This document shows positions 8,098 to 36,522 of a stretch of 64,000 nucleotides of DNA, piece by piece. Below the pieces are notes generated by a model, which saw only the letters and a program-made list of their open reading frames with translations, searched no databases and was not told where the DNA came from. The translations under genes were made by a program, and so were the position numbers. Origin of the DNA: Entomortierella parvispora E1425 (Eukaryota; Fungi; Mortierellomycota); contig BQFW01000006.1 in NCBI GenBank assembly GCA_020891255.1, positions 496,001 to 560,000 of the forward strand, written 5' to 3'. The first letter of the stretch is position 1; the number at the start of each line of letters is the position of its first letter.

Positions 8098-9548
8098 AAA
8101 CGGGATTGTCAGGTCCTTTGGTCTAGAATCGACGGGTATTTGTGGTCTTCTTGGATCCCCCACGCTTCAGCCCTAGATAGTTTTCGTTGGTCAGAGGAGG
8201 TTGGAAGTGGCTATAGACTGCCGACGATGACGATCCCGCGGCCGCATTAGCTGCTGCTGCTGCCGCCCAGCTGGACGAGAATGAGCTATCGTTCCCAAAC
8301 AAGTTGCTAGTGTCTCCAAAAATGTTGGATGAGCTTGAGGGTGAGCCACTCAACCCTGAGAGTGCCGTCTGGAAGGCCAACGGACTGAACCCGGCCGCCG
8401 TCAGATCCTGTTGCAATCGCTTCTTGCTCTCTTCTTGACTCAAAATCTGCTGGATGCGTTTTTGCTCCAGGAAATAGGAAAACTCCTGTTGCTGCGCTGG
8501 TGTCAACAGCATCTCTAATCCAGAAGGGGTCGAGGTCATTCCGGAGTTGACACCAGGGAATGCCGAGGGCGATGAAGCATTGTTTGTGGGCTGGAGCATC
8601 CGCTCCAACAACTTGGGATCCTTCTGTAACGCGATCGTGAACACATCTGCAAGATCCAGCTCAGCCTTGTTCTTGTTGTTCTGCGAGAACAAAGACGATG
8701 AAGTCGACTTTGCCTTTTGACGCTTCAACAGCCATTCTTGCAACAAATTCCGCATCTCCTGCGCCTGCTGCTGTTGGATCTGGAGCTGGTACTGTTGTTG
8801 CTGACGTTGCATTTCCTGTTCGTGATGAAGCTTCATCTCCAATTGCATCTGGTATTGGCGCATCTGCTCTTCCCGTTGTGCTTGTTCGCGTTGCTCGTTG
8901 ACAATTTGTTCTTGGTGACGAATGTATGCCTGCAGTTGTGCGAACTCTTGAGGGAATTCGCGGGAGAACGTGTTCATGTGAACGAGAAACGCCTGTGGGT
9001 TCGAGAGGTTGAGCTGATGAAGGAATTGAAGATACTGGACTCGAAGTTCCTCTTGCTCCTTTTGAAGTCGAATAGATTCGCTCGACATCCACTCATTGTT
9101 GCCATTGTAAGCAGGCAAGGCCCGGAAGAGTGAAGGAGGATCATCAAAGACAGGAGAGGAGTTCTCAAAGGGATCGTGGGTGGTGGGATCCATCTTCATG
9201 AGATAGGCCAGATCAATGTCCATAAACGACTGCTTGGTCATACGACGGAGCATTCCAGGGACCTTGGCTGGGCCGTTGGAGCCATCCAAGCCAGGGACGG
9301 TGCGATGACGACTCTGGAGAGGCTTGTTGGGGGCCATTTGAGACTTCATTGTTGTATGTTGGGTTCTGTGAGAGAGAGAGAAAGAGAGAGAGAGGGAGAG
9401 GGCGTGTGTATGTGTTGCTGTGTAAGAGTCGAGAGCAGTAAAGAATCTGGGGAATTGAGCAAGAGTCGCGCTCTTTTTATACCTGACGGTGTGTGTTTGA
9501 CGATGGCCTGATTAGGAATTTGAGCGACGCTTTCTCGATTGACTAGAA
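8098..9548 (-). repeat. Left arm of a 1451-bp inverted repeat
   Basis: Reverse complement of 17342-18792. Both ends and a microsatellite-containing UTR segment match base for base, and all overlapping ORF translations in the track (408, 143, 138, 111, 67, 64 aa) are identical between the arms. Confidence 0.97.
8123..9349 (-). CDS. Uncharacterised Q-rich, coiled-coil-prone 408-aa protein (copy A, inside the IR)
   Basis: Intronless ORF with ATG, an upstream TATA box (9474-9481) and a pyrimidine-rich 5' UTR. Identical to 17541-18767. No family recognised. Confidence 0.8.
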   Translation of the reverse strand: MKSQMAPNKPLQSRHRTVPGLDGSNGPAKVPGMLRRMTKQSFMDIDLAYLMKMDPTTHDPFENSSPVFDDPPSLFRALPAYNGNNEWMSSESIRLQKEQEELRVQYLQFLHQLNLSNPQAFLVHMNTFSREFPQEFAQLQAYIRHQEQIVNEQREQAQREEQMRQYQMQLEMKLHHEQEMQRQQQQYQLQIQQQQAQEMRNLLQEWLLKRQKAKSTSSSLFSQNNKNKAELDLADVFTIALQKDPKLLERMLQPTNNASSPSAFPGVNSGMTSTPSGLEMLLTPAQQQEFSYFLEQKRIQQILSQEESKKRLQQDLTAAGFSPLAFQTALSGLSGSPSSSSNIFGDTSNLFGNDSSFSSSWAAAAAANAAAGSSSSAVYSHFQPPLTNENYLGLKRGGSKKTTNTRRF

Positions 9549-15376: not shown

Positions 15377-17408
15377 CTGCAGAGCAGGCAGGTCAGCGAA
15401 TAGATTAGAAATTATGGAGTGCAATTAGAACACTTGTAAAAAGCTGCAGAGGAAAAACGAACAGAATAGTCGGGAAATGGCGCCGTTGCAAGTAATGGTG
15501 GACAGAGGAAGAATGGTGAAGGAGTGTAGTGGGAAACTGAAGAGGAATAAGGACAACTAAAGGCAGAACAGCGCGTTGATGGTCTTGAGGATCGAAGATG
15601 ATGAAGATAAAAAATATGAGCGAGAAAATGGGGGTGCCCATGCCTTTTTATAGAAGATTAGAAGATTGACCGATCGTTTTTTTTTTTTTTTTTTTGTATC
15701 ACGCACTTCATTTGGTTACTCATTGCTAGCTGTACAATGGTGTTCTGTGTTCTACGCTGCAAGTTTCAATGCTGTGCTCCTGGCGAGTCCCGAGTGCTGC
15801 CATTAGCCGCAAGACGGATGGATCAACGTGTTCTTCTCCGCTGAGAGAATGAGATCCGTGCCCCCGCAAGTGTTCACTCGTGATAATTGTTTTGACAGGG
15901 ATAACGGGGGACTTTAATTGCTTGAGTTGCTCTTCACCAGAGTAACAGACTGCAGTGATGGTATAGGTTCTGAGAGGTCATGAGCTGCCGTAGTCAATTC
16001 CTGCGGACTGTATTAACGCCACCTCAATGTTCGTCTCCAGACTTCGATGAGGCAAAAACAGGGAATCTGGTTGTTACAGAGCTGCGAAGGATGATATGGA
16101 AGACCAAAAATGTTTTGGTGTTCTGGAGTTATCTTGACAAGGGAGCAGCATCGGATATGGTCAATTGGAACGTTCCTGTATCATACCGCACGTTGGTCAA
16201 CGACGAGAATGACCAGAAATGGACGACAATCCTTTCCCAAGATAGAAACCTGCATTTCTTTTCTCCAGTTCCTCGCAGAGAGGAGATTTTGCTTAACTCG
16301 ACTAAGCCATGTTTTGTACCACCATCCTTGCTGTTTTTGGTGTTGTCTTGCAAAGCCCCGTCTCTGCTATTTTATTCTGGCTCTACTCTTTCCACTCGCT
16401 TCAATGAGTCGACGGTACAAGAATAAGGGTCCATGCTGCGTCACACTCCGAGTCTTGGACTCTTGGTTCTTCTTTAGCATCGTTCGCCTTCTGATGTAGT
16501 GTGCGGAGCAAGTATTCTTCGTTTCTAGAGACTTCGTATCCTGAAAGCATTTGGTCAATTGGGAGTGCTTGAGTTAATAATAAAGATTGATGGATGAGTG
16601 CTGAAGGGGTTGAGTGCAAACAAGTCGTCTTCGTTTGCCGTATCAGCAGCTCATATGCTGATATAAAAAAAATTCGAGATCTCAAAACCAGTGTAGATCA
16701 AAACTAGCCCGGCTTGATGGACGGAGGCATCATCGCCTAGAACGCAACCAGTATGCAGTTGAGAGGAGGCGTATACAAGGGTTATATTGAAGTCTTCAGT
16801 ATGGTTCATTCCCTAGGCTGCGGCATCATACAAACGTTCATAAGAACAATGAGCGCGCCACCATTGTCACTGCTGACATAAGGCATCCTGAGTGGTAAAA
16901 GGGGGGGGGGGGAAGGTGTTGAATTTCTAAATGAAACCAGTGGACAATGGGGGCGAAGCTCATTGTCATTGATTGCGGCCAACCCCTGGATCCTTCGTGG
17001 CTGTGCCCGCGGAGAAGACTGTGCTTCGTATGCTTTCACCGCTATTCTTCCCCGGAGCATAGTCGCTGTTGTTGAATTGATGTTGTGGTGCAGGGTTAGT
17101 TACTCAGCCCGGCAGGACAGGGTGGCGATCAGCATCAAGGACTTGCGTTTTTTTTTTCTTCTTGACAAACCATGGCAAGAGGAAGAATCTCCGGCTTCGC
17201 CACAAATAATAATCTTTGGAGCAGAATCACCAAGATCAACAATGCCCCCCTGATGGCATCCAAATTCGTCAATCGAGATGGACGGCGTATTTCCATAATA
17301 GGAGCGTGCTCTCACGCTTTCTCAATCCGTGAGCACAGTGATTCTAGTCAATCGAGAAAGCGTCGCTCAAATTCCTAATCAGGCCATCGTCAAACACACA
17401 CCGTCAGG

Positions 17409-17416
17409 TATAAAAA
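17409..17416 (+). promoter_or_regulatory. TATA box (TATAAAAA) of the duplicated 408-aa gene; mirror copy at 9474-9481
   Basis: Consensus TATA about 130 bp upstream of the ATG, followed by a CT-rich leader. Confidence 0.6.
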
Positions 17417-17540
17417 GAGCGCGACTCTTGCTCAATTCCCCAGATTCTTTACTGCTCTCGACTCTTACACAGCAACACATACACACGCCCTCTCCCTCTC
17501 TCTCTCTTTCTCTCTCTCTCACAGAACCCAACATACAACA

Positions 17541-18767
17541 ATGAAGTCTCAAATGGCCCCCAACAAGCCTCTCCAGAGTCGTCATCGCACCGTCCCTGGC
17601 TTGGATGGCTCCAACGGCCCAGCCAAGGTCCCTGGAATGCTCCGTCGTATGACCAAGCAGTCGTTTATGGACATTGATCTGGCCTATCTCATGAAGATGG
17701 ATCCCACCACCCACGATCCCTTTGAGAACTCCTCTCCTGTCTTTGATGATCCTCCTTCACTCTTCCGGGCCTTGCCTGCTTACAATGGCAACAATGAGTG
17801 GATGTCGAGCGAATCTATTCGACTTCAAAAGGAGCAAGAGGAACTTCGAGTCCAGTATCTTCAATTCCTTCATCAGCTCAACCTCTCGAACCCACAGGCG
17901 TTTCTCGTTCACATGAACACGTTCTCCCGCGAATTCCCTCAAGAGTTCGCACAACTGCAGGCATACATTCGTCACCAAGAACAAATTGTCAACGAGCAAC
18001 GCGAACAAGCACAACGGGAAGAGCAGATGCGCCAATACCAGATGCAATTGGAGATGAAGCTTCATCACGAACAGGAAATGCAACGTCAGCAACAACAGTA
18101 CCAGCTCCAGATCCAACAGCAGCAGGCGCAGGAGATGCGGAATTTGTTGCAAGAATGGCTGTTGAAGCGTCAAAAGGCAAAGTCGACTTCATCGTCTTTG
18201 TTCTCGCAGAACAACAAGAACAAGGCTGAGCTGGATCTTGCAGATGTGTTCACGATCGCGTTACAGAAGGATCCCAAGTTGTTGGAGCGGATGCTCCAGC
18301 CCACAAACAATGCTTCATCGCCCTCGGCATTCCCTGGTGTCAACTCCGGAATGACCTCGACCCCTTCTGGATTAGAGATGCTGTTGACACCAGCGCAGCA
18401 ACAGGAGTTTTCCTATTTCCTGGAGCAAAAACGCATCCAGCAGATTTTGAGTCAAGAAGAGAGCAAGAAGCGATTGCAACAGGATCTGACGGCGGCCGGG
18501 TTCAGTCCGTTGGCCTTCCAGACGGCACTCTCAGGGTTGAGTGGCTCACCCTCAAGCTCATCCAACATTTTTGGAGACACTAGCAACTTGTTTGGGAACG
18601 ATAGCTCATTCTCGTCCAGCTGGGCGGCAGCAGCAGCAGCTAATGCGGCCGCGGGATCGTCATCGTCGGCAGTCTATAGCCACTTCCAACCTCCTCTGAC
18701 CAACGAAAACTATCTAGGGCTGAAGCGTGGGGGATCCAAGAAGACCACAAATACCCGTCGATTCTAG
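17541..18767 (+). CDS. Uncharacterised Q-rich 408-aa protein (copy B, inside the IR)
   Basis: Identical translation to 8123-9349. AATAAA downstream near 18841. Confidence 0.8.
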   Translation: MKSQMAPNKPLQSRHRTVPGLDGSNGPAKVPGMLRRMTKQSFMDIDLAYLMKMDPTTHDPFENSSPVFDDPPSLFRALPAYNGNNEWMSSESIRLQKEQEELRVQYLQFLHQLNLSNPQAFLVHMNTFSREFPQEFAQLQAYIRHQEQIVNEQREQAQREEQMRQYQMQLEMKLHHEQEMQRQQQQYQLQIQQQQAQEMRNLLQEWLLKRQKAKSTSSSLFSQNNKNKAELDLADVFTIALQKDPKLLERMLQPTNNASSPSAFPGVNSGMTSTPSGLEMLLTPAQQQEFSYFLEQKRIQQILSQEESKKRLQQDLTAAGFSPLAFQTALSGLSGSPSSSSNIFGDTSNLFGNDSSFSSSWAAAAAANAAAGSSSSAVYSHFQPPLTNENYLGLKRGGSKKTTNTRRF

Positions 18768-21763: not shown

Positions 21764-23266
21764 GCTGTCCCGATTGCGCTTGGATTTTTTCTCTTTGATT
21801 TTGCGTAGCAGAACAATTGATCAGTAAACATTTCTTTTTTTTGTATCTGTTTGTTGATAATGATGTTGAGCGAGTACGTGGGATTATCTCGAGATGATAT
21901 GACAGAATATCAGTCTAATAACAGCCTTGTCTAAGCAGCTCGAAAGAAGAAAAAAAAGGTGCAGTCTGGCCTTGCTTTTTAAGACCGGAACTGCACAACT
22001 TCGATGTCTGGCAGAATAGCTTGCTTTTTTTTTGTTTGTTGAGAAAGATAAAGAGGCAGAGTAACTCTCAGAATGTGCGACCGCCCTTATCATAGCCCAC
22101 AAGTGGACTAGACAAGATCATCAATAAGCAACAAAGGACTCTTCCGAAGAAAAGAACTCTGAGCTTCGCTTCCCTCTATGGGCAGCGCACTTCAACTCAT
22201 CGTCGAGAGTAAACTGTGTGTCTAAGTTGGAAAACAAAGACTGGAGATGAACTAGACAGAAATCCTGTAAAGTACGATCATAAGGAGAAAAAAAGTTCCT
22301 GTTGCTCCCTTTCTTTTATAGTCCACTGGGACGGCTCTTTCAGCAGTCATGCATGCGCCACAAAAAAAGAAAAAAAAATCATCAAACACCGTTACGATGG
22401 GATGCTGGTCTCAATTCTCATACAAGTTGCAGCGGTCAATTTCATTTGGAGTGTCTCGATGAAAGTGCATTCCGTCCTCAATCCACCTGCTTGAGACCCG
22501 GGAACTACCTTCTGGCAAAAATCCATGCGCCACAGGCGCCTCTGATTTGCTGCCATCACTCTAATCTTACAATCGGATCTCCATTCCATTATATTTGGTA
22601 ACAAGATCAAAGATCGCCTCCCTTTGGAAATTATATCACATCTAGAAACTACATCGAAGCTGCAAAGGGCGTGTAGTCACATTTTTGTTTATTTTCTTTT
22701 TTTTCGTTAACATCATTTTTAACTGTTGTTATTAGAAGAGGAGAGAGTATCTATGGAGGGCTGGGCGACACAGAAGTAGTAGGGTTAGACACAAGTACTT
22801 TTCCGGTAATCATTGAATGAAGTTATAAGTGTGAGGGGGAGGTTCGTCGCACTCGTTGATCCACGATACAACGAGAGGATCGGAAGTGAGAAAAGTCAGA
22901 ACTTCTTAGAGATTATACGGAGTCATAGGATGTTTGGTCCTGGTATAGTAATAAAGTTGTCATCATACAAGCCAGTAGCTTGTTGCAGGAAGGGGAAAAG
23001 AAGAGTGTTCGAGAAAAGTAGATCAGAGTGGGTAACTTACATTGAGAAGGGGTTGGTGAAGAAGAGATCAGTTCGGCGCGCAAAGAAAATTTATGCAGAA
23101 AAAAAAAAAAATCGGTACTGTCACGGAAGATATTTCGAGTCGTAAGGGCTGCGATCTGATAAGCTGGTTCCTTTTTCTACCTCTTTTTGTTCTCTGTCCT
23201 GGCCGCAGTTCTTCCTCTCTTGTTCATCCTCAAGCTCTGCTAACATTCATTTCATACCTAGCACAC

Positions 23267-24787
23267 ATGCCACGCCTCGAACAACTCGCCGTGCTGCAAG
23301 GTGCCTTCATTATGTTTCGTTCGCCTTTCATCGCCTTTTTTTGGTTGTGTCTTGCTCATCTGACTAATGCCATTTCACCGCCCCTCAATGTATCCGCAGG
23401 CCACGAAGACCGTGTCTGGTGCGCCAGTTGGCATCCCACAAAGCCCATCCTCGCCACATGTAGTGGTGACAAGACTGTTCGAATTTGGCAAGCAACCAAT
23501 GCCAGTGACCCAACGCAGTGGCAATGCATCAATGTTCTGGAAGGCGGTCACAAGAGAACCATCCGCTCAGTTGCCTGGTCACCAGACGGTCGTCAACTCG
23601 CCACAGGATCCTTCGACGCTACGACTGGAATCTGGGAACGGGATGAGGACGAAAGTGGAGGTACGGTATTTAATTCCGGTGCTTTTTTTCATGAGCAGTG
23701 GTGGTTCATTGTTTGTGCTCTTGAATTTGTAATATGCCCGCCCCGGGTGCAGGAAAGGAGTCAACGGATCAGATCGGGAACAAAACGACAAATTCTAAAT
23801 GCTCTGTCAACAAGGGGGAACAAAAAATATATATCCAGGGCATGGGATCATTTGGACTCACCTTAACTGTTACGACTCTTCCTTAGACTACGAGTGCGTG
23901 GCGACGCTGGAGGGACACGAGAACGAGACAAAGTCAATAGCGTGGTCCAAGAGTGGCGCCTTGTTGGCGACCTGTTCCCGTGACAAGAGTGTTTGGATCT
24001 GGGAGGTAGAGGAGGATAATGATTTTGAATGTCTGAGTGTCTTGCAGGAACATACCCAGGATGTGAAGATGGTTGCTTGGCACCCTAATGAGGAGGTAAG
24101 CTGACGTACTCCAGAAGACAACCTTGGAGGATCATCCTGAACCTATTTACTAATCGGTTAACTCATGGTATGAATTCTTGCTTCTTATGTTTTTAGCTAC
24201 TTGCTTCTGCCAGTTACGACGACACTATTAAAATTTGGAGAGACGATGATGACGATTGGTACTGCGCAGATACTCTTCAGGGACACGAGTCGACTGTTTG
24301 GGCTATCGATTTTGATCCTTCTGGCAACCACTTGGTGTCTGCTAGCGCGGATCAGACCCTGAAGATCTGGCGACGGTATGCACCAGGAAACGCTACAGGG
24401 ATCATGACTCCTCGTCGAGGAGAGGCAGTGTGGAAGTGTGTAGCCACCGTCAAGGATCAACATGAACGTTGCATCTACTCGGTTTCATGGTCCAAAGTTC
24501 ATGGAATGATTGCATCCTCTGGAGCAGACAACATAATCCGCCTCTTTTCAGTTCAGGAGGTGGACGAGTCGGCAGCCGTCGAAGGAAAGCTGACGCCAGA
24601 ACAAATCAAGGCCACGAACGAGCCTGGAGTGCAGCTGCAAGCCATTAAAGTGACTGAGGTCCCTAGCGCACATGGAACCAGTGATATTAACTCCGTAGCC
24701 TGGTACCCCAATGAAGACCACGCAGACTGGTTGGCATCAGGAGGAGACGATGGCTCTGTCCGGATCTGGAGAGTTGTCAGAGATTGA
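23267..24787 (+). CDS. CIA1: WD40 cytosolic iron-sulfur assembly protein Cia1/CIAO1, 4 exons
   Basis: [12 protein letters not shown]|[12 protein letters not shown]...[16 protein letters not shown]...[12 protein letters not shown]; [20 protein letters not shown]...[11 protein letters not shown]; [13 protein letters not shown]; [12 protein letters not shown]...DDDWYC; LASGGDDG. Confidence 0.93.
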
Positions 24788-25666: not shown

Positions 25667-27219
25667 TTAAACTGCTGTTGCGGATGTAGAGGTAGATCCT
25701 TGAGACTTGACAAGGGCGGCGTACTTCTTGGAGGGTCTTTGAGGAGTTGATTGAACCGTGCCCTTAGACTCGATTTTGGGCAGGAACGTGACCTGGGGAC
25801 GGTACTGGCAGATATACTCCAGGGATCTTTCCTTGAAGTATTTGGGGACCATCTTCATAAGCAAAAAGCGACCAGCCGTATCCAACCACGTCTAGCAGGA
25901 TCAAGGTGAGAGTAGATATTTTCTTTGTTCAATAACTCTGTCAGTTCTTCCCAAAAAAAACAGGCAGTTAAATTCGTTTTACCTTTCCGGCTAAAATAGT
26001 GGCGCTTTGCTGCTTGGGCGAAAGATCCCGTTCGTCCGTGGGGAAACGCTCTGCATAGAATTCCTCAAAGGCACGAGTGATGTTCTTGTGATTGGCATTA
26101 GGCATCTCGTACAGCGCGTTGGACAAGATGATAGCGTCGAGGATGGCATTCAAGGCACCGAAGTTGGGAAGAACCTTTACGAGTAGAAGAGAAAGTTAAT
26201 GAGATGCAGTGCTAGGTGGTGTGCACAGGTAGTTTTTTGCTCAGAGCTACACATGTCAGTCAATCTTACTCGGTGGGCAGCTATTTTCGAACACGACATT
26301 GAGAGATATAATCGAGTCAGAATATACATGCTTGTCGGATAGAGAGAGAATCGAGACAAAATAGAAATAAATTAAGTACCATCGCCAATGAGAACAGTCC
26401 TCTTGTGGTACCAGCTCTGGGGAACATTCTCCTCAAGGACGACCTTGGAAAGACGCTCCTTGGGTGTGGCATCAAACATCTGTCCAAGATTGCCCATGAT
26501 GGCCAGCTCATATTTGCGAAAGTCAGGGTTGATGCTCTCCTTAGGGAAGGCCAGGTAGTCCGAGTTCTTCCATGCCTCAATATCTTCTGGAGTCATCGAG
26601 TTGCTCTGGTAGTCGAATCTCCAGCAGACCCTGTTATCGGTGGCCGTGAAGTATCTCCAAGTCTCGCCACGACCTTCGCCAATGATAGTGTCTGAGTGTG
26701 ATTCCTCCTCGCCCAAACCTTCGTAATTTGCAGGGTCCAAGTTCTCAGCAACGCCGAGATAACTCATGATGTGAATCTGAGGCTCATCAACCTTGATCTT
26801 GGGCGTCATTCCATCCTTCTCCATGTCTTTGTACATGGCTTTGCGAACGTCACTGTAAGCGCCATCTGCTCCAATGAGGAGATCACCTGTATAAGTAGAC
26901 TTGTCCTCACAAGTGATCGTAACAGTCTCAAGGTCTTGCTGCAGTGAAACAATCTTCTTGCCCATGTGGATCTTTTCTTTTGGGACGTGCGACAAAAGCA
27001 GGGCATGGAACTCTGGACGGGATGTTACCAAAGTATCATAGCCAGTTCTATCGGGAGGAGAACATCACCAAATGTGAGTTGGATGCAACAACGGCTGTTG
27101 TGTAAACCAGGAGCAAACAATGGTTCTATTGCTGACAGAGCCATGTGCTGTTGTGCATGGTGCCACAAAACACGTTGTGTATTAAGCAACAGGATTGATT
27201 GAACGCCCATGGCATGTCC

Positions 27220-27255
<36 letters not shown>

Positions 27256-27579
27256 AGCACAAACGAAAGTTGATCACGAAGCTTACCCCAACTTGTTCTC
27301 TCTGAGGCGGATCTCACGAATGACCTCCATGTCCTGCTTGAAGATCGTGTTGATCTCCACAGTAGTAGATATCTTTTTGAGGTCCTCGAGCATCCCAAGT
27401 TGATCAACGGCGGCCATGATGTTATAACTGAGGCCGCAGGCAGCACCCAGGGGAAGAAATTCTGTGTTGCTTTCGAAGATCTGGTAATCAAGACCGGCTT
27501 TCTCGAGCAGAATACCCATAAAGAGACCACCGATGCCGCCGCCAGCGATAAGAATTTTTGGTGATGTGGGAGTGGACAT
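25667..27579 (-). CDS. FAD-dependent monooxygenase (FAD_binding_3/UbiH-like family), multi-exon
   Basis: GxGxxG (KILIAGGGIGGL), DLLIGADGAYSDVR, RTVLIGD|AAHR|VLPNFG, YRPQVTFLP; stop at 25667. Confidence 0.9.
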
Positions 27580-30500
27580 GGCTATGGCACGAATAGGTTG
27601 GGAAGCGAGATTGGGAGGAACAGAGCGCGCGGTATTGGTAGAGTATGAAGAGAGGACTCTGTTTGTAGTCGAATGGGATCAGATGGCGAATGGGATCAGA
27701 TGGCGAATGGAAGGATGAAATGAGGCGAGGAAGGGAAAGATGAAGAGAAATGGGGGGATGAGGCGCGGACAAGGAACAACGGATGGACAACGTCGATGGA
27801 GGCGTGCGATGGGTGAAGAGAGCCAGGTCAGAAAGAAACCGAAAAAAGAAAGTTTATGGATCCATAGCATGCAGCCCGCCTCTGTTGATGATCACATATT
27901 TAAAGTGTAATGCAACGGTTGCAAATGAGGTCCACTTCACGTCGCAAACCGGTTGTCCCTGGGTCTGCGTTCCTTCTTCGCCGACCTTCTGTTCCTTGCT
28001 CATGCTCGGCCGATGCTGGTGCTGCAATCAGTCCATGCTTTTCTTTCTCCCAGTATACTATTAATCCTTGACTTACCCTGTCGCACCCCGCTCTGTACAC
28101 CCCTCTGCATCGAAATGTTACTTACTACCTCCATCATGGTTAGCATCGATGCTGCAACAAGATGGGCCAGTCTCTCTTGCGCCTGCGAGGATGGCTCTCG
28201 GAAGCGTCCCAGGTCCTCTTTCCGTTCCCTGCTCCCTTTGCACAAAAATAAATGAGAGCCATTGTTGCCCGCCCGTCAGCAATCGAGCACAGTCAACCTG
28301 AAGTTTTTGGCTTGAACTTTGAATATTTTTTTTTGAGCCACTTCGAGACACCATTGTTTGGCTATTGCTTTTGCATTTTGGCAGGTTGATACCGCGATGA
28401 TTTTTTCCGCTTTGTTTGCCTATCTTCAGTAAAAAGTTGGCTCAGTTGAAGACGGCAAATAAAAAACCAGTCAAGCCTAGCCAACGATGCGACAGAAGCC
28501 CAAATTTTTTTACTAGGCCAGTCAGTTCGCGTTCGAGCTGGCAGCACCATATTGATGGATCCATTGGGACTGGAGCCCTATAAGGCTCATAAACCGATTT
28601 TTTTTACCAGATCGTGGCCCTCCAAAAAGCCATGTTATTATTATTGATTCGCGCTCCCTATCGATCAATACAACTTGTTTGGCAAATCCTTCGGCCCTCC
28701 TTGACCACCTTGTCCAACATTTACACGAAGGACTTGCTAAACGCAAGGGGTGTAAGCCATGTGCAGCAGAAGGACAGCAACACGATGGCCACACGTGAAT
28801 CATCATACCAATCTATGTTTACGATTTGCCATTCGATATCTCCACTCCGTCCTCCTCTGTTACTATTGCACCATGTGTCTCTCAGGACTGGTCTCTTGCG
28901 TCCATTTCGACTTTAATAAATTTTTCGCTACATGCTATTTTGACCTAGTCCACTGATTTGTCAATGGTGTCGCTGTGCCAGGGTCGTGCATGTGTTGCTC
29001 CGTTACCTTGGGCTGGAGTCCGTGACATGGGTTGATAGGATTCAACTCCACAAAGACGATGGCATTTCTATGGTTAATGGTTGGAGAATGTTTGGAGTAT
29101 GAGCTGGTAGTTGTGTCCCTTGGTGCCCTTCAGAACCAATTCTGTCTCTCTCACTCTGCTCATACGATCTTTCGGTTGTGTTAGGATCGTTTCGCATGCT
29201 GGGCACAGTAGAGCAGCCTCGAAGCCCCGGTTTGCACATCTTACATAAAAATAAAAAAAAACATCTGTGGATCGATCATTTAAAAACAACATCCAAATCA
29301 CAGGTACCAGGAGCCTGGAGGACATAGACCTACGAGAACATGTAGTAACGCAGGCCTATAACAGAAAACTAGGATCAGTATTGGTGCTAGGGGTAAAGAC
29401 TCGTTCCTGGATAAGAAACTGCTTTGGACTGATACCTTCTCTTGAGATCCATGAGTGGCTGTACGTGTCAGCAGGTTGCCTGCAAGTTGGGGGCGTAGAG
29501 TGAATACGGGCCATTTAAGACCAGAAAGGCTAACAGAGTACATCCGTCATACACTTTAGCTCCTGTTCAGCCATTAAATAAGAGCGTGAATGTGAGGAGC
29601 AAGTGTGTAGATGAAATATGTAACCTTGGGAGGCAAGGACAGAGGGAGAGGAGCAAAAAAGCGAAGGAAAGAACTCTCGAAACGATGCCTGACTGATTTA
29701 TCCGCCACACAAAGCGTCTCCTCTTGGATCTTGCTCTTCTGAAGGTCACTCTTTCTTTCCTCAGGTAAACCTCGTTCCTATCCTCTATCCAGGCTACAAG
29801 ATACTGATGGTCCCTCATCCGTCCATGCATATTTTTTTTTTGGCCATGCTCAATTCTCTTGACGACAAATTATAAATTCCATGTCGCATGTGCTTTGTGG
29901 CAACCTCCACAATTACAACACCAATTGAATCGGACATTATTGTTGAGAAGGAACAGGGCATGGCGGGGCTGGAGATTTGTTTTTTGAGAGGCGCCGCTCT
30001 TGCCTCGTGTAGTGTTGCATCTCGCTGCAAGAACAACAGCTCGATCGTGGTTGCTCTTGTTGCTTTTTTTTGTGCTACGCCCGTTCTTCCTTTGCGGCTC
30101 TCTCTCATTGGAATCCAACCCGCTCTCCTTCATTATTCATTTTAGATCCCAGCAGACTAATGCCACATGGCCTTGTCCTTATGCAGCCCTCTTGTCCTCC
30201 GGTGTCCTATCCATCTCCTGGCCCCATTGCGCTCCAACTGGTCCACCACCATCAGTGAGCCGAGGTCTTCTTTTGCATCGAGTAAACAACCCGCTGTGAT
30301 CTTACTTTGTATGACAAGTGCCTCCCGCCCACGCAAGTGATCGAGTGAGAATACCCTCCCGTTTCTTCATTTCAAAAAAGAAAAACAGCCTGCATGTCGC
30401 ACACAAAAAACAGAGTTGGCTCCAACCAGGACCGTTTGTTTTCTTGGTCAGTTGCCTTTCCTGTTTCTGCTAGCTAGGTGCACTCCAGAAAGCACTTCGC

Positions 30501-30834
30501 ACAAAAGAAAAAAGACTAGAGACGGGAGACCAGCTGGAAGTTTGCAGGTCCTTTCCTCGACGCGATTAATTCAGAGATGGAGTGCTCGTGCCTGTAAACT
30601 CTTCGTTTAACCGTATGCATGTCCACATGCATGCGGTCACTGAAGGTCAGAGTCACAACATATAGTCTATAAAAGAGAGACGAATCCTCTCTCTTCGCAA
30701 CAATTCCTTGATCACAAAACTCCTTGTCCTTGCCCTTGATCTTGATCTTCAGCTTTACTCTCGTCTCTTCCACTACCAGGTAGTCTTGGACCTTAAAATC
30801 TCTTTTTCTCCACGGTCCTTCAAGAAACCCCCAC

Positions 30835-32025
30835 ATGCTGCTTCGCTCTCGTTTAGCCGCCACTTGTTGCTGTTTAGCACTCGCAACCGCCCTTTTCTCG
30901 CTGCCACAGGCAATTGCGCAATCACTTGCACCAAAATCGGATGTAGTCAAGCGGGCCTTCTCAGGCGACGCACCCGACGACCCAGGCCCTCTCGCCACAG
31001 ACCTCTCATCCAAGCTGAAAAGTCCTGACATTCAGTATGCAATGAAGAAAGTTGCTGACTGGCAGCTTCGCGTCGCGGAGTCAAAGTTCAACTCGCTATG
31101 GACCTTTGCTGCACTCTACGATGGCCTCATTGCTGCTTCTGCCACCACCGGCAATCCCGCTTACCGCAAAGCTGTAGAAGAGTATGCCGACCAACAGCAT
31201 TGGATCCTCATTGACGATCGTTTCCCTCACGCCGACGACATGGCCCTCGGTAAATCTTACACCGAACTCTACCTCACTGAAGCTCCTGCCGAGCAGAAAC
31301 CAGATCAAATCGCCAACACCAAGGCCAACCTTGACCGCTTACTGGTCCGTCCTGATGACCCGGATAAGAACCTTTGGTGGTGGTGTGATGCCCTCTACAT
31401 GGCGCCCCCCGTCCTTGTCCGTATGGCCAAAATCACTGGCAACCACAAGTACATCGACTATATGAATCACGAGTGGGACCTCACCACAGCCGATCTCTAC
31501 AGCCCCATTGAGCACCTCTTCTTCCGCGACGACCGCTACTTGAACCAAACTGAGGCCAACGGCAAGCCGCTGTTCTGGTCGCGCGGGAATGGCTGGGTCA
31601 TGGGCGCACTAGTGCTGATCCTGCAGGACCTTCCCATCCACGATCCCTCCCGTTCTAAATTTACCACCCAGCTGCAAGACATGGCTGCGACCCTGGCCGC
31701 AATACAGAGCCCGGATGGGCTTTGGCGTTCAGGTCTCCTCGACCCTGCCTCCTATGATCTACCCGAAATCTCTGGCTCCGCCTTCTTTACCTTCGCGATG
31801 GCCTATGGCATCAATGAACACATCCTCGATCGCAAAAAGTATGAGCCCGTCGTCGCCAAAGCCTGGGCCGGCATGCTAAATCACATTTACGCCGACGGTC
31901 GCCTGGGCTCGATCCAACCCGTCGATGCTGCACCTGGAAAATTCAAACCCTCAGCCAGTAGCGTCTTTGGCGTTGGAGGCTTCTTACTTGCAGGCTCCGA
32001 AGTCAACCGCTTGGCTCGCCGCTAA
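30835..32025 (+). CDS. Secreted unsaturated (rhamno)galacturonyl/glucuronyl hydrolase, GH105 (Glyco_hydro_88 clan, YteR-like), intronless
   Basis: Signal peptide. Motifs HADD, WWWCDALYMAPP (catalytic Asp position), HLFFRD, FWSRGNGWV, QSPDGLWRSGLLDP, EISGSAFFTFAMAYGI and FGVGGFLLAG. TATAAAA at 30668-30674. Confidence 0.92.
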   Translation: MLLRSRLAATCCCLALATALFSLPQAIAQSLAPKSDVVKRAFSGDAPDDPGPLATDLSSKLKSPDIQYAMKKVADWQLRVAESKFNSLWTFAALYDGLIAASATTGNPAYRKAVEEYADQQHWILIDDRFPHADDMALGKSYTELYLTEAPAEQKPDQIANTKANLDRLLVRPDDPDKNLWWWCDALYMAPPVLVRMAKITGNHKYIDYMNHEWDLTTADLYSPIEHLFFRDDRYLNQTEANGKPLFWSRGNGWVMGALVLILQDLPIHDPSRSKFTTQLQDMAATLAAIQSPDGLWRSGLLDPASYDLPEISGSAFFTFAMAYGINEHILDRKKYEPVVAKAWAGMLNHIYADGRLGSIQPVDAAPGKFKPSASSVFGVGGFLLAGSEVNRLARR

Positions 32026-32693
32026 ATCCTTCGACTCTTAGGTGTCCTCCAGGACTACCCGCTTTGTTCCCATGGCCAATTTCAGAAAGCGAACTTTTTA
32101 GCCCCAGAGTGCTTCCCCGGCAATCGACTCCAAAAGGGCACCAACCTCTACGCCGAAGCGTGCATATTCCGAAACAATTCTCACGCCGAAGGTTCCACAT
32201 CTAACTACCTGCAAAAGATGCTTCTACACGTACACACACAACACACACACACACACACCTCACAAAGTAAACTTCGGTACTTGACAAAAAGTGATGCATG
32301 ATGAACTAGGGCAATTGTAGTTAGAAGCTTCTGGAATCTGCATGAGGGAGGCAAGAAGTAGAGGGGAGAGGTGCTCAATTGTTGTCGGGAAAGGGTATGG
32401 GCAAGGAAAGCGGGGTGGACTTTGGGTGTGGGACAGGAAGTAGTAGAAGAAGCATATCAGGCAGTGAGAGGAGCCATTGGAGGCAAAGAAAAGGGTGACA
32501 GTGTAACGCCCAGGGTATGGAGGGGCTGAAAGATGAGCGAGACAATCATCGAATCAGAGCCGAACTGAAGTCCCTTGCTCATTTCCACGCGTAGTCGGGC
32601 GCGTGTCTCACAGCGATAACGCGACTCTGGATCCTTGTCGCCCTCAAGTCCATGTCAGGGAGTGCAAGCGCCGCTTGTCGTAGCTCCAATTTT

Positions 32694-33375
32694 TTATTTG
32701 GATTTTGGAGTTGAATCTGCCGATGAGCGCTGCTTGAGTGCTTCTTTCTGTCTATCCAAGCGTGGCATTTGACGAAATGTTGCTGTTTGAGGTAATGTCG
32801 GAGGATCGTTTGTTGAGGGGGAGGGCCTCTTTGCTGAGTACCATGCAAAATGCGCCATGGTTATCTCACCCATTGGCTGCAAGCCGCCATCGCCGATTAC
32901 TCCTCAGCAGATGCTTGGGTGCGGCTTTTTGATGTTCTTCTGATTTGATCCTGACTCCCGGAACCGACTGCTTGAGGCCTAATATCTGTCAAGTACGCGA
33001 AGATATCCACAACTATGTCGTCTTCATTTGGCAACCACCTTGCCTCAGTAGTCCAAGCACGCTTGGGTTTCACTTGCCAATACGGTTGATAGTATTGTGT
33101 GCTACAGTAAGTTATGTGTGGGGTTAACATGGAGCGCCTGATCCTGCGGCCATACAAGTCTTTCAGTAAAGAGGCTGGTGCCACCTTGGCAGCTAAAGAG
33201 TCAATGTCGTCTTCCTCTCTTCCTCCCATTTAAAACTCCAGACTTCAGGTTCGGGCCAACTTTTTCGAATTCGGCTCCTTTGGAGAGGGGCGCCATAGTA
33301 AAGGTCAATCCAGTTCAGTACAGTGGGGGTCATTTCCTTCATCAGAGGGTGATCTTGTTGAAGCTGTGTGTACAC
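32694..33375 (-). pseudogene. Probable pseudogene remnant of an unidentified protein family
   Basis: A 54-nt GTATGG...CTGTAG intron (33155-33102) joins LLKDF-TQYYQPYWQVKPKRAW...DIVVDIFAYLTDIRPQ...ASAEE. An in-frame TAA follows (32897-32899), then a frameshifted continuation GEITMAHFAWYS. Confidence 0.4.
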
Positions 33376-34120
33376 CCTCTCACATCAAATTATTTCATAC
33401 ACACAGCTCTATTGGACCCCCTACTTTGCGACCAGCCCCAAGAAATGAGGGTTTCCTCTTTGGGATGAAATTCCGCGCTCACTGACTGTCGGAGGGGATG
33501 GCGACGAGCCCACACAATAAAGATATCGAGGCACGTTTCCAAGATGAAAGGCTACCACTTCCTCTCCAGAATGAGGGTGTCTCCCCGCATTGTGACTCTC
33601 TGTCTTTGACCTGAATGGCTGCAGAAAAAAAAGCTCAGGTTACACACTTGGCGACAATGCATTCTCAAGACGTGCTGTGGACGGCGGGCGTCCAGGGGAA
33701 CGAAGGCACGTTTGGTCGACCGATGCTCGCTGTCTCGACAATGCAATTGCTGCTCTCAATGTTGCTCACCCATCAATCATTGAATTGACCCATCAATTCA
33801 TCATTCACTTCGTTAGCTCCCTTCATCTGGATGCTGTGCATTTGTTCCTTCAACCCAGACGACAGAACTTCCTTCTCATTTCTCACTGGCCTTTCTACAC
33901 CATTTCGACCCGCCACCTCTCTCTCATACTCTCTCTATCTCCCTTCCAACTTTGCTTCCACCATCTGTCCCACTCTTTTGCAAAGCTTCAGAGTCGCTCT
34001 CTTTTTTCTTAGTTCTGGAGGTTCTAGTTGAACTTTCTCTTCGGCGGAAGATTGTTTCCAAGTCTGTTGAGCTCGACTTTCTTTTTTTTTTGTGCTAGTC
34101 TTAAGGAATATTACCAGCCG

Positions 34121-34783
34121 ATGAGCGACAAACCAACGGTTCTGATCGTGGGAGCTGGCCTGGGAGGCCTCACCATGGCTATCCTACTTGAGCGCGCTGG
34201 GTTCGAGTATAGGGTCTTTGAGCAAAGCGAAGAGTTTCGGCCATATGGATCGGCGATTGGACTTGGATTTAATGTCATGCCTCTGATGGAGCAATTGGAC
34301 CTGCTAGAGGACATCCGGGCCATCTCCAAAATCATTGAGGTGACTTCTATCTGGAAGGATTCTATGGACCTGATCAGGAGCGTCCGACTCAAGGACAATC
34401 GAACTCTGTAAAGTAGCTTTTCTGGATGTTTCTTTTGTTGACGTTGTTGCCGTTGTTGTTTGTTGCGGCAAAAGTTGAACACAAGCGTAAACGTTCTTTC
34501 AGACCACATGGACTCTGACATGTTCTTTTTCTGTATTTCAGCACAGGATACGACTCTCTGATGATGTCAAGGTTCGATCTTCACCAGATCTTGCTATCTC
34601 GTGTTCCCAAGGAGAGAATCTTTATGAACCATAAGATTGAGTCCATTCTGCAAGACAAGCACAGAGTTACGATCCGATGCACCAACAATACGTTCCATCA
34701 GGCAGACATACTGGTGGGTGCAGGTAAGGAAAAAAGACCGAGGCGGATGAAAAAAAAGGCGGTAGACAGTCATTCATCCCCCC

Positions 34784-34820
<37 letters not shown>

Positions 34821-36522
34821 GAGCAGACGGTGCCTACAGTGCGGTGAGGCAGAGTCTTTATGACAGATTGAGCATGACAGGAAAACTACCAGAAGCAGAC
34901 TCAACTCTTCTCAAGATCCGACATACTACATACCTCGGCACAACCCAGCCGATGAATCCAGCAGACTTTATGGGATTGGACGAGCCCATATCCCATTGCG
35001 ATACCATTCTTGGAAGCAACGGACCAGAAACCGTAAGGACCCACTCATTTTTGTTTGTTTTGCGGCGTTCTCCTTATTGCCAGATGCTAACCCACATGGT
35101 GCAATTTATTTCGGCTATTTTTTTTTTTTTTTTTTTTTGACAGTGGAGATATTTCACAATACCAAACAATAGAATCAGCTGGAGAATTGATGTACAGGTC
35201 ATGGACGATGAAATGGTGGACCCCTATTGCGATACATCACGGAACTCTGAATATAGCCCGGACAAGGACTTTAAAGTACCGGAATCATGGAGAGGGTTCA
35301 AGCTTCCGATTCAAGGAACGGTTGGCGACCTGATTGATGCTACCCCAGCAGAATATCGGACGAAGGCAACGATAGAGGAGAAGGTCTTTGAGACGTGGTA
35401 TAATGGACGAACGGTACTTATCGGAGACGGTAAGATAGAAGCGGAAAGAGACAGCCGGGGACGGGATATGCCTTGGGAACAGTACAGTGCCAGATTATTG
35501 ACAATCTCTTTTTTTTGTGATACTTTCTCTTTGACGTACTGGGCACTGGTAATAATTTATCCACCTATGGGTCTCCTCTCCAGCCTGCCATAGGGTAAAG
35601 TGCTTTTCCGTTCTTGCTACTCTAATCATAACGGGCATTTTGAGATACGGTCCTTAACACGCGTGTATTACTGTCATCACTCGATTAGATGTTACCTAAC
35701 TTTGGACGCAGTGGTTTGAATGCCATGCTTGACGCTGTCATTTTGGCTAATGCCCTTTATGAAATCAATCCTCCCACCCCGTTTTCTTCTTCAACTACCC
35801 CGATGTCTCCAACAGCCGGCGCCATGCTGCTGCCGTCCTCCTCATCCTCATTTTCATCCACCACCACCAATTCATCTTCCTCCCGACGACCATCCACCTC
35901 CACAGTGACCACCACGAGTACCAACAACCCAACGACGGGCGGCTTCGGATCTCCAACTCTTTTCTCTAATTCACGCGGTCAAAAACTGATCAAGGCTGCG
36001 TTCGAAACATACTACAAGGAGCGATACCCGATCATGATGTCCGAACTGGCTGCCAGTCAACAAATGTTTCGCGTCATGGCAGGTCAGAGCAAGACCGAAT
36101 CCATAAAACGAAGCGTGATGCAGAAGGTGATGCCCAAATGGCTCTCGAACAAGTCAGAGTTCAAAGCCTCCTATCGACCTCAGGCGGCGTTCTTGGAAAG
36201 GCTCGAGAACAAAGGAACGTTGCCGGTACAGGAACAGAAACTTTCCAAGAAGTATCTGGCTATGCAGTTTCACTTACGGGCCGAGAGAAACCAACGGGCG
36301 AGGGCGACGAGTCTGGCGAGACACAGCATGGCCATAGGCGCTGGGGAAGAGTTTGGCGTGCGCTCGAGTGAGAATTTGAGCACATTGAAGGCAACGCGGA
36401 CCAGGACTCGATCCACGACGACCTCTTCGATTGATGAAGAGCTACCTCGCGGAGGCATCGCACCGGGATCCAGTTTGGATCTTTTTCAAAGGTCGCTAGC
36501 ACATATGATCACCAAAGACTAA
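34121..36522 (+). CDS. FAD-dependent monooxygenase, paralog of 25667-27579, multi-exon
   Basis: TVLIVGAGLGGLTMAILLERAG, DILVG|ADGAYSAVRQ, GRTVLIGD|ACHR|MLPNFGRSGLNAM, YRPQAAFLE. It has an S/T-rich insertion and an extended C-terminus. Confidence 0.9.

Follow-up and report, generated by a model that had tools for sequence, protein, structure and literature searches.

An Intronless, Putatively Secreted GH105 Gene of Probable Acidobacterial Origin in Entomortierella parvispora and Other Mortierellaceae

The window analysed here, 64,000 nucleotides of the Entomortierella parvispora E1425 genome (contig BQFW01000006.1, positions 496,001 to 560,000), contains a single uninterrupted open reading frame (ORF) of 396 codons plus stop (30835..32025, + strand, ATG to TAA) that encodes a putatively secreted member of glycoside hydrolase family 105 (GH105). 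The gene was very probably acquired by an ancestor of the Mortierellaceae from Acidobacteriaceae of the Granulicella/Edaphobacter type, together with a neighbouring lyase gene, lyA, that later decayed. Horizontal gene transfer (HGT) from soil bacteria had been proposed in an initial annotation made from the sequence letters, and the proposal is now strongly supported by database searches, a phylogeny, an approximately unbiased (AU) topology test, and genome continuity. Bacterium-to-fungus transfer of carbohydrate-active enzymes is known, and most cases are supported by a tree alone. The present case rests on several independent lines: the tree with its topology test, 82% cross-kingdom DNA identity, a donor signal peptide, and the stub of a neighbouring gene.

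The proposed history begins with one entry, in which a bacterial polysaccharide-utilisation locus would have contributed a piece of about 2.1 kb or more, carrying GH105 and the convergent lyA, to the Mortierellaceae ancestor. GH105 would then have kept its bacterial start codon and signal peptide, acquired a fungal promoter, remained intronless, and been retained by purifying selection. The lyA gene would have decayed to a truncated, frameshifted relic in Podila and been lost from the window, Linnemannia gamsii, and Mortierella alpina.

Relatives and phylogenetic position

A search of a 5.8-billion-protein collection gave 5692 matches. Among the best 120, the leading ones are Mortierellaceae proteins (70-82% identity) from Podila humilis, P. 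minutissima, P. epicladia, L. gamsii, Actinomortierella ambigua, M. alpina, M. antarctica, and Lunasporangiospora selenospora, and no fungus outside the Mortierellaceae appears among these 120. Cluster members add P. verticillata (including the reference strain NRRL 6337), P. horticola, Haplosporangium bisporale, and Mortierella sp. AD032. Judged by these sequences, the transfer is common to at least seven Mortierellaceae genera and not specific to E. parvispora. Directly below the fungi lie hundreds of metagenomic and genomic bacterial proteins at 63-76% identity, mostly from Acidobacteriaceae (Granulicella, Edaphobacter, Tunturiibacter), which turns a bacterial affinity that the initial annotation had suggested into a database result. 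Two motifs named there (GDAPDDPGPLA... and WWWCDALYMAPP) are indeed shared with Acidobacteriaceae proteins; the accompanying mention of Bacteroidetes did not hold up, the donor group being Acidobacteriaceae.

A positive control bears on the fungal side of this distribution. Queried with one of the fungus's own PF05426 lyases (first-exon open frame L006:2133-3203:-, residues 200-356), the same collection returns a broad fungal family spanning all Mortierellaceae genera, Umbelopsis, Calcarisporiella, Glomeromycotina, Orbilia, Basidiomycota, Ascomycota, and Mucoromycotina. Because the collection displays so broad a clade for the lyases, GH105 proteins of other fungi would have shown up as well, and no broad, vertically inherited fungal clade of GH105 is seen among its best 120 matches.

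On the bacterial side, a scan of one genome per species finds almost only Acidobacteriaceae (55-71% identity), including Granulicella, Edaphobacter, Terracidiphilus, and Tunturiibacter isolates with complete chromosomes. Tunturiibacter lichenicola MP8S11, T. psychrotolerans X4BP1, and Granulicella mallensis X5P3 are among the isolates that carry relatives; those found by the scan in Verrucomicrobiota and Planctomycetota reach 40-46% identity. Look-alikes in the ESM Atlas are 100% bacterial, mostly Acidobacteriota. A set of representatives at 50% identity, which served solely as a source of outgroup and alignment sequences, yielded fragments and matches of at most 51% identity. Three bacterial proteins (P0006, P0012, and P0021) are 74-76% identical to the window protein and lie on clearly bacterial contigs, in the company of RND pumps, NadABC, CarboxypepD_reg outer-membrane proteins, and IclR regulators.

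The phylogeny, which the initial annotation had named as a check on its proposal, comes out in favour of transfer. In a maximum-likelihood tree of 72 sequences over 413 columns (IQ-TREE, LG+C20+F+G4 with posterior mean site frequencies, PMSF), from which fragments and most near-duplicates from metagenomes were excluded, all 14 fungal sequences fall into a single clade on a stem of 0.147, deep inside the Acidobacteriaceae (100/99; supports are ultrafast bootstrap, UFBoot, over the SH-like approximate likelihood-ratio test, SH-aLRT). The sister of the fungal clade is bacterial P0006 (98/89), followed by P0019 (98/94). Deeper acidobacterial groups are supported at 94/91 and 93/97, and the split from the Verrucomicrobiota outgroup at 100/99. 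A FastTree phylogeny of 194 sequences agrees. Acidobacterial monophyly occurs in 0 of 200 bootstrap trees, and constraining the acidobacterial sequences to one clade is rejected (difference in log-likelihood 92.6, AU p = 0.00014).

Donor locus, fungal integration, and rival explanations

In Acidobacteriaceae, the gene belongs to a conserved, uncharacterised locus that comprises GH2, GH105, two PF05426 lyases, a CarboxypepD_reg/OMP_b-brl_4 protein, and IclR (ENA metagenome contigs L092/L093, L005, and acidobacterial genomes L012-L030). The donor-type order runs from GH2 on the minus strand to GH105 on the plus strand, then to lyA, lyB, and the CarboxypepD_reg outer-membrane protein gene, all three pointing back towards GH105, and on to IclR, with NadABC or an RND pump nearby; lyA and lyB are PF05426 "alginate-lyase-family" genes. 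Convergence of GH105 and lyA is the usual order in the Granulicella/Edaphobacter-type loci nearest the fungal clade. Terracidiphilus-type genomes have the lyase co-directional with GH105, not convergent.

In four Podila-type assemblies, the opposite strand immediately 3' of GH105 holds a broken piece of lyA, which reads as a trace of the donor gene order. The piece covers aa 191-396 in a P. humilis metagenome-assembled genome (MAG; about 80% identity, one frameshift), aa 273-396 in a P. minutissima isolate (69-76% identity), and aa 349-396 in a Logan assembly (83% identity). In a P. epicladia isolate it is heavily decayed, with a tblastn match over aa 131-391 and a DNA match to about codon 112. 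The contigs are fungal (GC 0.47-0.49), with HET- and RCC1/PHD-domain genes adjoining the relic. Nucleotide identity between P. humilis and bacterial locus L092 is 82.5% across 1057 nt of GH105 and 82.45% across 604 nt of the relic, with about 90 extra bases between the two. Because the relic lies beside GH105, the transferred segment would have comprised two genes and at least 2.1 kb. In a comparison of P. humilis with P. epicladia, identity is 75.8% with 13 gap openings for the relic and 89% for the GH105 coding sequence; this faster decay of the relic is the behaviour of a pseudogene. No lyA relic was found at the L. gamsii and M. alpina loci, and no GH2 relic in any fungal locus compared. 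The three PF05426 lyases of E. parvispora were considered as co-arrivals with GH105 and ruled out, being 30-45% identical to lyA/lyB and members of the broad fungal family. The L. gamsii and P. humilis MAG loci (L002 and L004) have unrelated flanks, as though GH105 alone had relocated.

The export signal appears to be a second inheritance from the donor. The window protein begins with a putative signal peptide of about 28 aa (30835..30918, + strand), a hydrophobic segment ending in AIA/Q (...PQAIA/Q), its cleavage point placed by the A-x-A rule only. The initial annotation had claimed such a peptide, and inspection without a predictor sustains the claim. Aligned with it are bacterial P0006 (...LALSLPLFTLPSALAQ) and Podila (...LALAIALFILPSALAQ), the window protein itself reading ...CLALATALFSLPQAIAQ; by this alignment the signal peptides of fungi and bacteria are homologous, the start codon and export signal of the bacterial gene having been carried over.

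The bacterial look of the gene (76% protein identity to bacteria, no introns, GC of 0.56 against about 0.49 locally) is also what an ORF from a co-sequenced acidobacterium would show if contamination or a chimeric assembly had brought it in. Its setting effectively refutes this and leaves it a negligible chance. The assembly (20 contigs, 38.9 Mb) places the gene 527 kb into a fungal contig, where split genes of eukaryotic type flank it on either side, and a 7.6-kb short-read DNA contig covers 28800-34200 with zero differences, crossing both junctions at an even depth of 73. Continuity with the flanking intron-containing genes, another check that had been suggested, is thus well documented. There are also orthologues in more than 13 independent assemblies of Mortierellaceae, in some cases on scaffolds of 0.8-3.7 Mb. 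Further, the strain was antibiotic-cured and axenic, and its genome assembly is Nanopore-based (PMC8759367); the fungal copies make up a separate clade marked by substitutions of its own, and identity to bacterial sequences nowhere exceeds 76%. Scarcely more credible is vertical descent of an old eukaryotic GH105 that almost all other fungi have lost, or a reverse transfer from fungus to Acidobacteria. GH105 does occur in Dikarya (e.g., Thielavia terrestris 4XUV), but this ascomycete GH105, the one Dikarya enzyme compared, is about 20% identical to the window protein against 63-76% for Acidobacteriaceae. The fungal clade moreover sits many supported nodes inside an acidobacterial radiation rooted by Verrucomicrobiota and Planctomycetota, the bacterial gene is part of a conserved operon-like locus whose lyA part reached Podila, and introns are found in no fungal copy.

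The course of events within the fungi is a separate matter. A single entry, placed close to the family's base and followed by losses, is favoured over secondary spread, because the fungal copies are monophyletic (100/99) and present in at least seven genera. The competing account accepts a real acidobacterial transfer and proposes that the spread was not purely vertical, whether by fungus-to-fungus transfer or introgression from a Podila-like lineage or by repeated acquisition from one narrow donor lineage; we consider it unlikely, if well ahead of the two explanations above. It would account for flanks without synteny between genera, a feature that may be expected anyway at such divergence, where microsynteny can be poor. 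It would also account for the 90.7% DNA identity between the L. gamsii and P. humilis MAG copies, which is confined to a stretch starting 7 nt 5' of the ATG and ending 95 nt 3' of the stop, and for a relic that has diverged only 18% from bacterial DNA. Synonymous divergence (dS) between Podila and P0006 (0.66-0.76) is not above that between fungal genera (0.8-1.3), but NG86 estimates of dS are distorted by the bias towards C at third codon positions (C3) common to Podila and the donors. Patchy distribution points the same way, GH105 not having been seen in the proteomes of Linnemannia elongata, Lobosporangium, Gamsiella, and Dissophora; these absences rest on clustered protein sets, in which the same genera are present for the lyase family, and not on genome searches. 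Repeated acquisition in particular is made improbable by the monophyly of the fungal copies on their 0.147 stem despite dense bacterial sampling (5692 matches).

Several observations nevertheless weigh against the favoured history of one basal entry from an acidobacterial donor. When the window flanks were compared by tblastx and blastn with the loci of L. gamsii, M. alpina, and Podila, no match beyond the gene itself emerged, and with such non-syntenic flanks a single integration followed by vertical descent needs later relocations. In Podila, the relic has kept as much similarity to bacterial lyA as GH105, a gene under constraint, has to its own bacterial counterpart, which is hard to reconcile with neutral decay since an ancient family-wide transfer; either lyA would have remained functional in the Podila lineage until recently, or the cassette would have moved between fungal lineages at a later date. 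The window itself holds no donor-derived flank (E > 0.04) and no relic of lyA, lyB, or GH2 (best E 0.046, at an unrelated site), so that the evidence for co-transfer comes from Podila only. Branching within the fungal clade is weakly resolved (supports 81-86), and the group constrained in the AU test was chosen after sight of the first tree, the hypothesis itself being the prior one of the initial annotation.

A more tentative proposal, to which we give somewhat less than an even chance, is that the two-gene fragment of GH105 and a PF05426 lyase worked as a module in Mortierellaceae with an unmodified bacterial signal peptide, the lyase having long remained active before recent, independent losses, or the cassette having moved between lineages. 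If so, these fungi would have borrowed from Acidobacteria the capacity for feeding on a uronic-acid polymer, possibly an acidobacterial or fungal exopolysaccharide, and the Podila relics would provide a rare and datable record of how a fragment of an operon is domesticated by a eukaryote.

The gene is maintained by selection and probably expressed. Ratios of nonsynonymous to synonymous substitution (dN/dS), 0.12-0.34 among fungal copies and 0.10-0.34 once comparisons with bacterial genes are included, show the fungal copies to be under purifying selection. A transcript-like unit spans 30799..32771 (+ strand) as one unbroken 1973-nt contig from run X2, reaching from 36 nt 5' of the ATG to 746 nt 3' of the stop, and the island has a depth of 156 against 0-24 in its flanks; X2 covers islands of the region only. 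Run X2 comes from the same sample as the DNA, and an RNA-seq library was prepared from the same mycelium (PMC8759367), making expression of GH105 probable. The kind of run is a guess, no run being recorded as RNA, and the expression claim is weakened to that extent. Runs X3 and X4, which carry the same species label, matched only short dispersed repeats of the 29867-29924/32936-33510 region, at very high depth.

The surroundings agree with what the initial annotation had described. GH105 is single-copy (C6:526835, the window being C6:496001-560000) and occupies a 6.4-kb gene-poor gap between two divergently oriented FAD_binding_3 monooxygenase genes. The left gene (- strand) has its first recognisable exon at 27283-27576 (PF01494 E 3e-7) and a further exon at 26372-27028, with another PF01494 match at E 2.8e-4; its exons occupy different frames, so it bears introns. 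The first exon of the right gene lies at 34028-34408 (+ strand, PF01494 E 4.9e-9). A WD40 gene to the left of the FAD genes (23093-24787) is also split, and the uninterrupted ORF therefore stands as an intronless gene among intron-bearing ones. The TATA-like box described earlier, TATAAAAG, is present at 30668-30675 (+ strand), 160 nt 5' of the ATG, where a promoter role is plausible from sequence inspection. The C-ending codons that had been read as a sign of amelioration proved not to discriminate. The window gene has a C3 of 0.44 and a third-position GC (GC3) of 0.63, at the top of the host range (GC3 0.43-0.645), and the bacterial relatives are C3-rich as well (C3 0.50-0.58, GC3 0.71-0.79); the codon usage fits partial amelioration, is by itself no evidence of residency, and was dropped as a diagnostic.

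Introns annotated in two orthologues were considered as intron gain and rejected: the M. alpina gene is in fact an uninterrupted 413-aa ORF, and the P. epicladia "intron" hides a frameshift. In the latter (L095:1193-2435, JAAAIK010001017.1) the frame changes near aa 274, where the published model uses a 34-nt "intron"; the change would reflect either misassembly, the genome being of low coverage, or a pseudogene of recent date. A repeat search around the window gene found poly(A)/poly(T) tracts and low-copy dispersed repeats only, with no bracketing terminal repeats. The tracts, of about 30 nt, lie at 27220-27260, 34792-34821, and 35115-35138, at the outer edges of the gene-poor gap. Short dispersed repeats at 29867-29924 and 32936-33510 lie on either side of GH105 and have low-copy relatives on C11, C13, and C16, and a (CA)n microsatellite (32226-32268) begins 200 nt 3' of the GH105 stop. 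Elsewhere in the window, two 462-codon open frames of identical composition stand in inverted orientation (8126-9511, - strand; 17379-18764, + strand).

The encoded enzyme and its probable substrate

Membership of GH105 is well founded. The protein matches PF07470 (Glyco_hydro_88, which covers GH88 and GH105) at E 1.1e-66 and 225.7 bits against a cut-off of 26.6, over aa 71-393 and profile positions 11-351 of 352. Among solved structures the closest is Nu_GH105 (4CE7; E 6e-66 over aa 66-392), followed by the Bacteroides structures 5NOA and 4Q88. An AlphaFold 2 (AF2) model, computed from an alignment of 37 sequences, is all-helical, with a predicted local distance difference test (pLDDT) score of 91.3. 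Foldseek superposes the model on 4CE7 with a target-normalised TM-score (TMt) of 0.88-0.89, a root-mean-square deviation of 2.0-2.2 Å, and 38% identity; TMt for 4CE7, 4Q88, and 5NOA together is 0.87-0.89. For Bacillus subtilis YteR, TMt is 0.75-0.76 and the query-normalised score (TMq) 0.70. GH88 unsaturated glucuronyl hydrolases (UGLs) reach only about 0.6 at 13-16% identity, placing the predicted fold nearer GH105 than GH88. The GH105 assignment of the initial annotation thus carries over, with a Pfam match, a predicted (alpha/alpha)6-barrel, and a candidate catalytic aspartate.

That aspartate is Asp185 (codon GAT, 31387..31389, + strand), which lies inside WWWCDALYM and aligns with the catalytic Asp143 of YteR (1NC5). 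It is invariant in all 72 aligned sequences and in the 37-sequence alignment. Equally invariant across the 72 are W183, M189, W248, and W254, which align with W141, M147, W211, and W217 of YteR, and R250, the equivalent of YteR R213; the roles of the YteR active-site residues have been described (PMC4528949). A HADD motif (H132-A-D134-D135; 31228..31239, + strand) is shared with Nu_GH105 in the alignment to 4CE7, as is Y95. The N-terminal half lies outside the sequence alignment to YteR, whose Asp88 and Tyr41 fall there, and HADD probably contains the equivalent of Asp88, with Y95 a candidate counterpart of Tyr41. All 13 fungal rows covering the site have both D134 and D135; in bacterial rows D134 is found in 58 of 58 and D135 in 57 of 58. 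H132 is substituted in two of the fungal rows covering the site.

GH88 and GH105 enzymes hydrate the C4=C5 bond of the unsaturated uronate that a polysaccharide lyase leaves at a non-reducing end, so releasing the uronate. By this mechanism, the window enzyme would bind a 4,5-unsaturated uronate at the non-reducing end of an oligosaccharide, Asp185 would protonate and hydrate the C4=C5 vinyl ether, and collapse of the resulting hemiketal would give an unsaturated sugar acid and a shortened oligosaccharide. The enzyme thus probably trims 4,5-unsaturated uronates from lyase-cut oligosaccharides, which resident PF05426 lyases, or lyases of soil neighbours, may supply. The fungal genome has three PF05426 lyase genes (C11:1673666-1674675, - strand; C2:631114-632107, - strand; C9:1219746-1220610, + strand; loci L006-L011) and one GH28. 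Each lyase has about 590 aa, a putative N-terminal membrane anchor, and one intron at a shared profile position (~121-125); in the L006 copy, the anchor-like segment belongs to a long N-terminal extension. Genome searches for PL1, PL3, and PL8 gave no matches, and those for PL4 (PF09284) and PL7 (PF08787) were uninformative, their positive controls giving no signal; among the lyase families with informative searches, the genome holds PF05426 only.

The substrate is likely to be glucuronate-type polyuronide oligosaccharides of bacterial, fungal, or plant/algal origin rather than rhamnogalacturonan, because Nu_GH105 is of the beta-glucuronyl type and the donor locus groups the gene with PF05426 lyases, GH2, an outer-membrane transporter, and IclR. 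Of the substrates suggested at the outset, rhamnogalacturonan is accordingly the one disfavoured, the closest characterised enzyme acting on beta-linked unsaturated glucuronyl residues; bacterial and fungal polyuronides keep their place as candidates. Two points count against this functional account. For fungal and acidobacterial members of the clade alike, the substrate is one that we infer. In addition, the position of YteR His189 is Arg231 in the window protein. The same arginine occurs in Nu_GH105 (4CE7), in 5NOA, and in 71 of the 72 clade members, and because Nu_GH105 is active with this replacement, Arg231 is best read as a subgroup trait and no defect.

Acidobacteriaceae are abundant and poorly cultured soil bacteria. 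The polyuronide on which their locus would act appears important enough in soil for a fungus to have retained the gene under selection, and the fungal copy, being easy to express, offers a practical route to identifying that substrate.

Comparison with known systems

Nu_GH105 of Nonlabens ulvanivorans, an unsaturated 3S-rhamnoglycuronyl/beta-glucuronyl hydrolase, is the nearest characterised enzyme by sequence and structure. The two proteins share the motifs HADD, WWWCDAL(Y/F)MAPP, FWSRGNGW, and GR(L/V)G as well as the arginine in place of YteR His189, yet are only about 38-45% identical. Nu_GH105 is a marine Bacteroidota enzyme that acts on ulvan oligosaccharides, whereas the soil acidobacterial clade of the window protein is partnered with PF05426 lyases and not with ulvan lyases. 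The founders of the family, YteR and YesR of B. subtilis (1NC5, 2GH4), have in common with the window protein the fold, the catalytic aspartate, and the equivalents of W141, M147, W211, R213, and W217. In contrast to these likenesses, the match to YteR is distant (E 9e-17, 22-23% identity, the TMq noted above), with Arg231 for His189. YteR acts on the alpha-linked unsaturated galacturonate-rhamnose (GalA-Rha) unit of rhamnogalacturonan I, and the substrate of the window enzyme is probably different. T. terrestris 4XUV is likewise fungal and secreted and shares the CAZy family and fold, but at E 3.4e-6 by sequence and 19-20% identity by structure it represents a different GH105 lineage; the window gene is no close relative of the Dikarya enzymes.

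For the transfer itself, the closest point of reference is a survey of HGT in 44 early-diverging fungal genomes, including that of Podila (Mortierella) verticillata NRRL 6337 (Ciach et al. 2024, PMC11291939), here consulted in its text and supplements, one supplement in part. Within that material, the main donors to Mortierellomycota are Burkholderiales and Actinomycetia, Acidobacteriaceae are not listed as a donor group, and there is no mention of GH88, GH105, PF07470, Acidobacteria, or KFH69223. Full-text literature searches found no paper tying GH105 or GH88 to horizontal transfer in Mortierellaceae; no published report of this transfer was found, bacterium-to-fungus transfer as such being already known. 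Like the cases described in the consulted parts of the survey, the present one concerns a metabolic enzyme whose gene lacks introns, came from bacteria, and became fixed in a soil fungus, and NRRL 6337 carries an orthologue. In contrast to those cases, this one preserves the donor's signal peptide and a remnant of the gene next to it in the donor.

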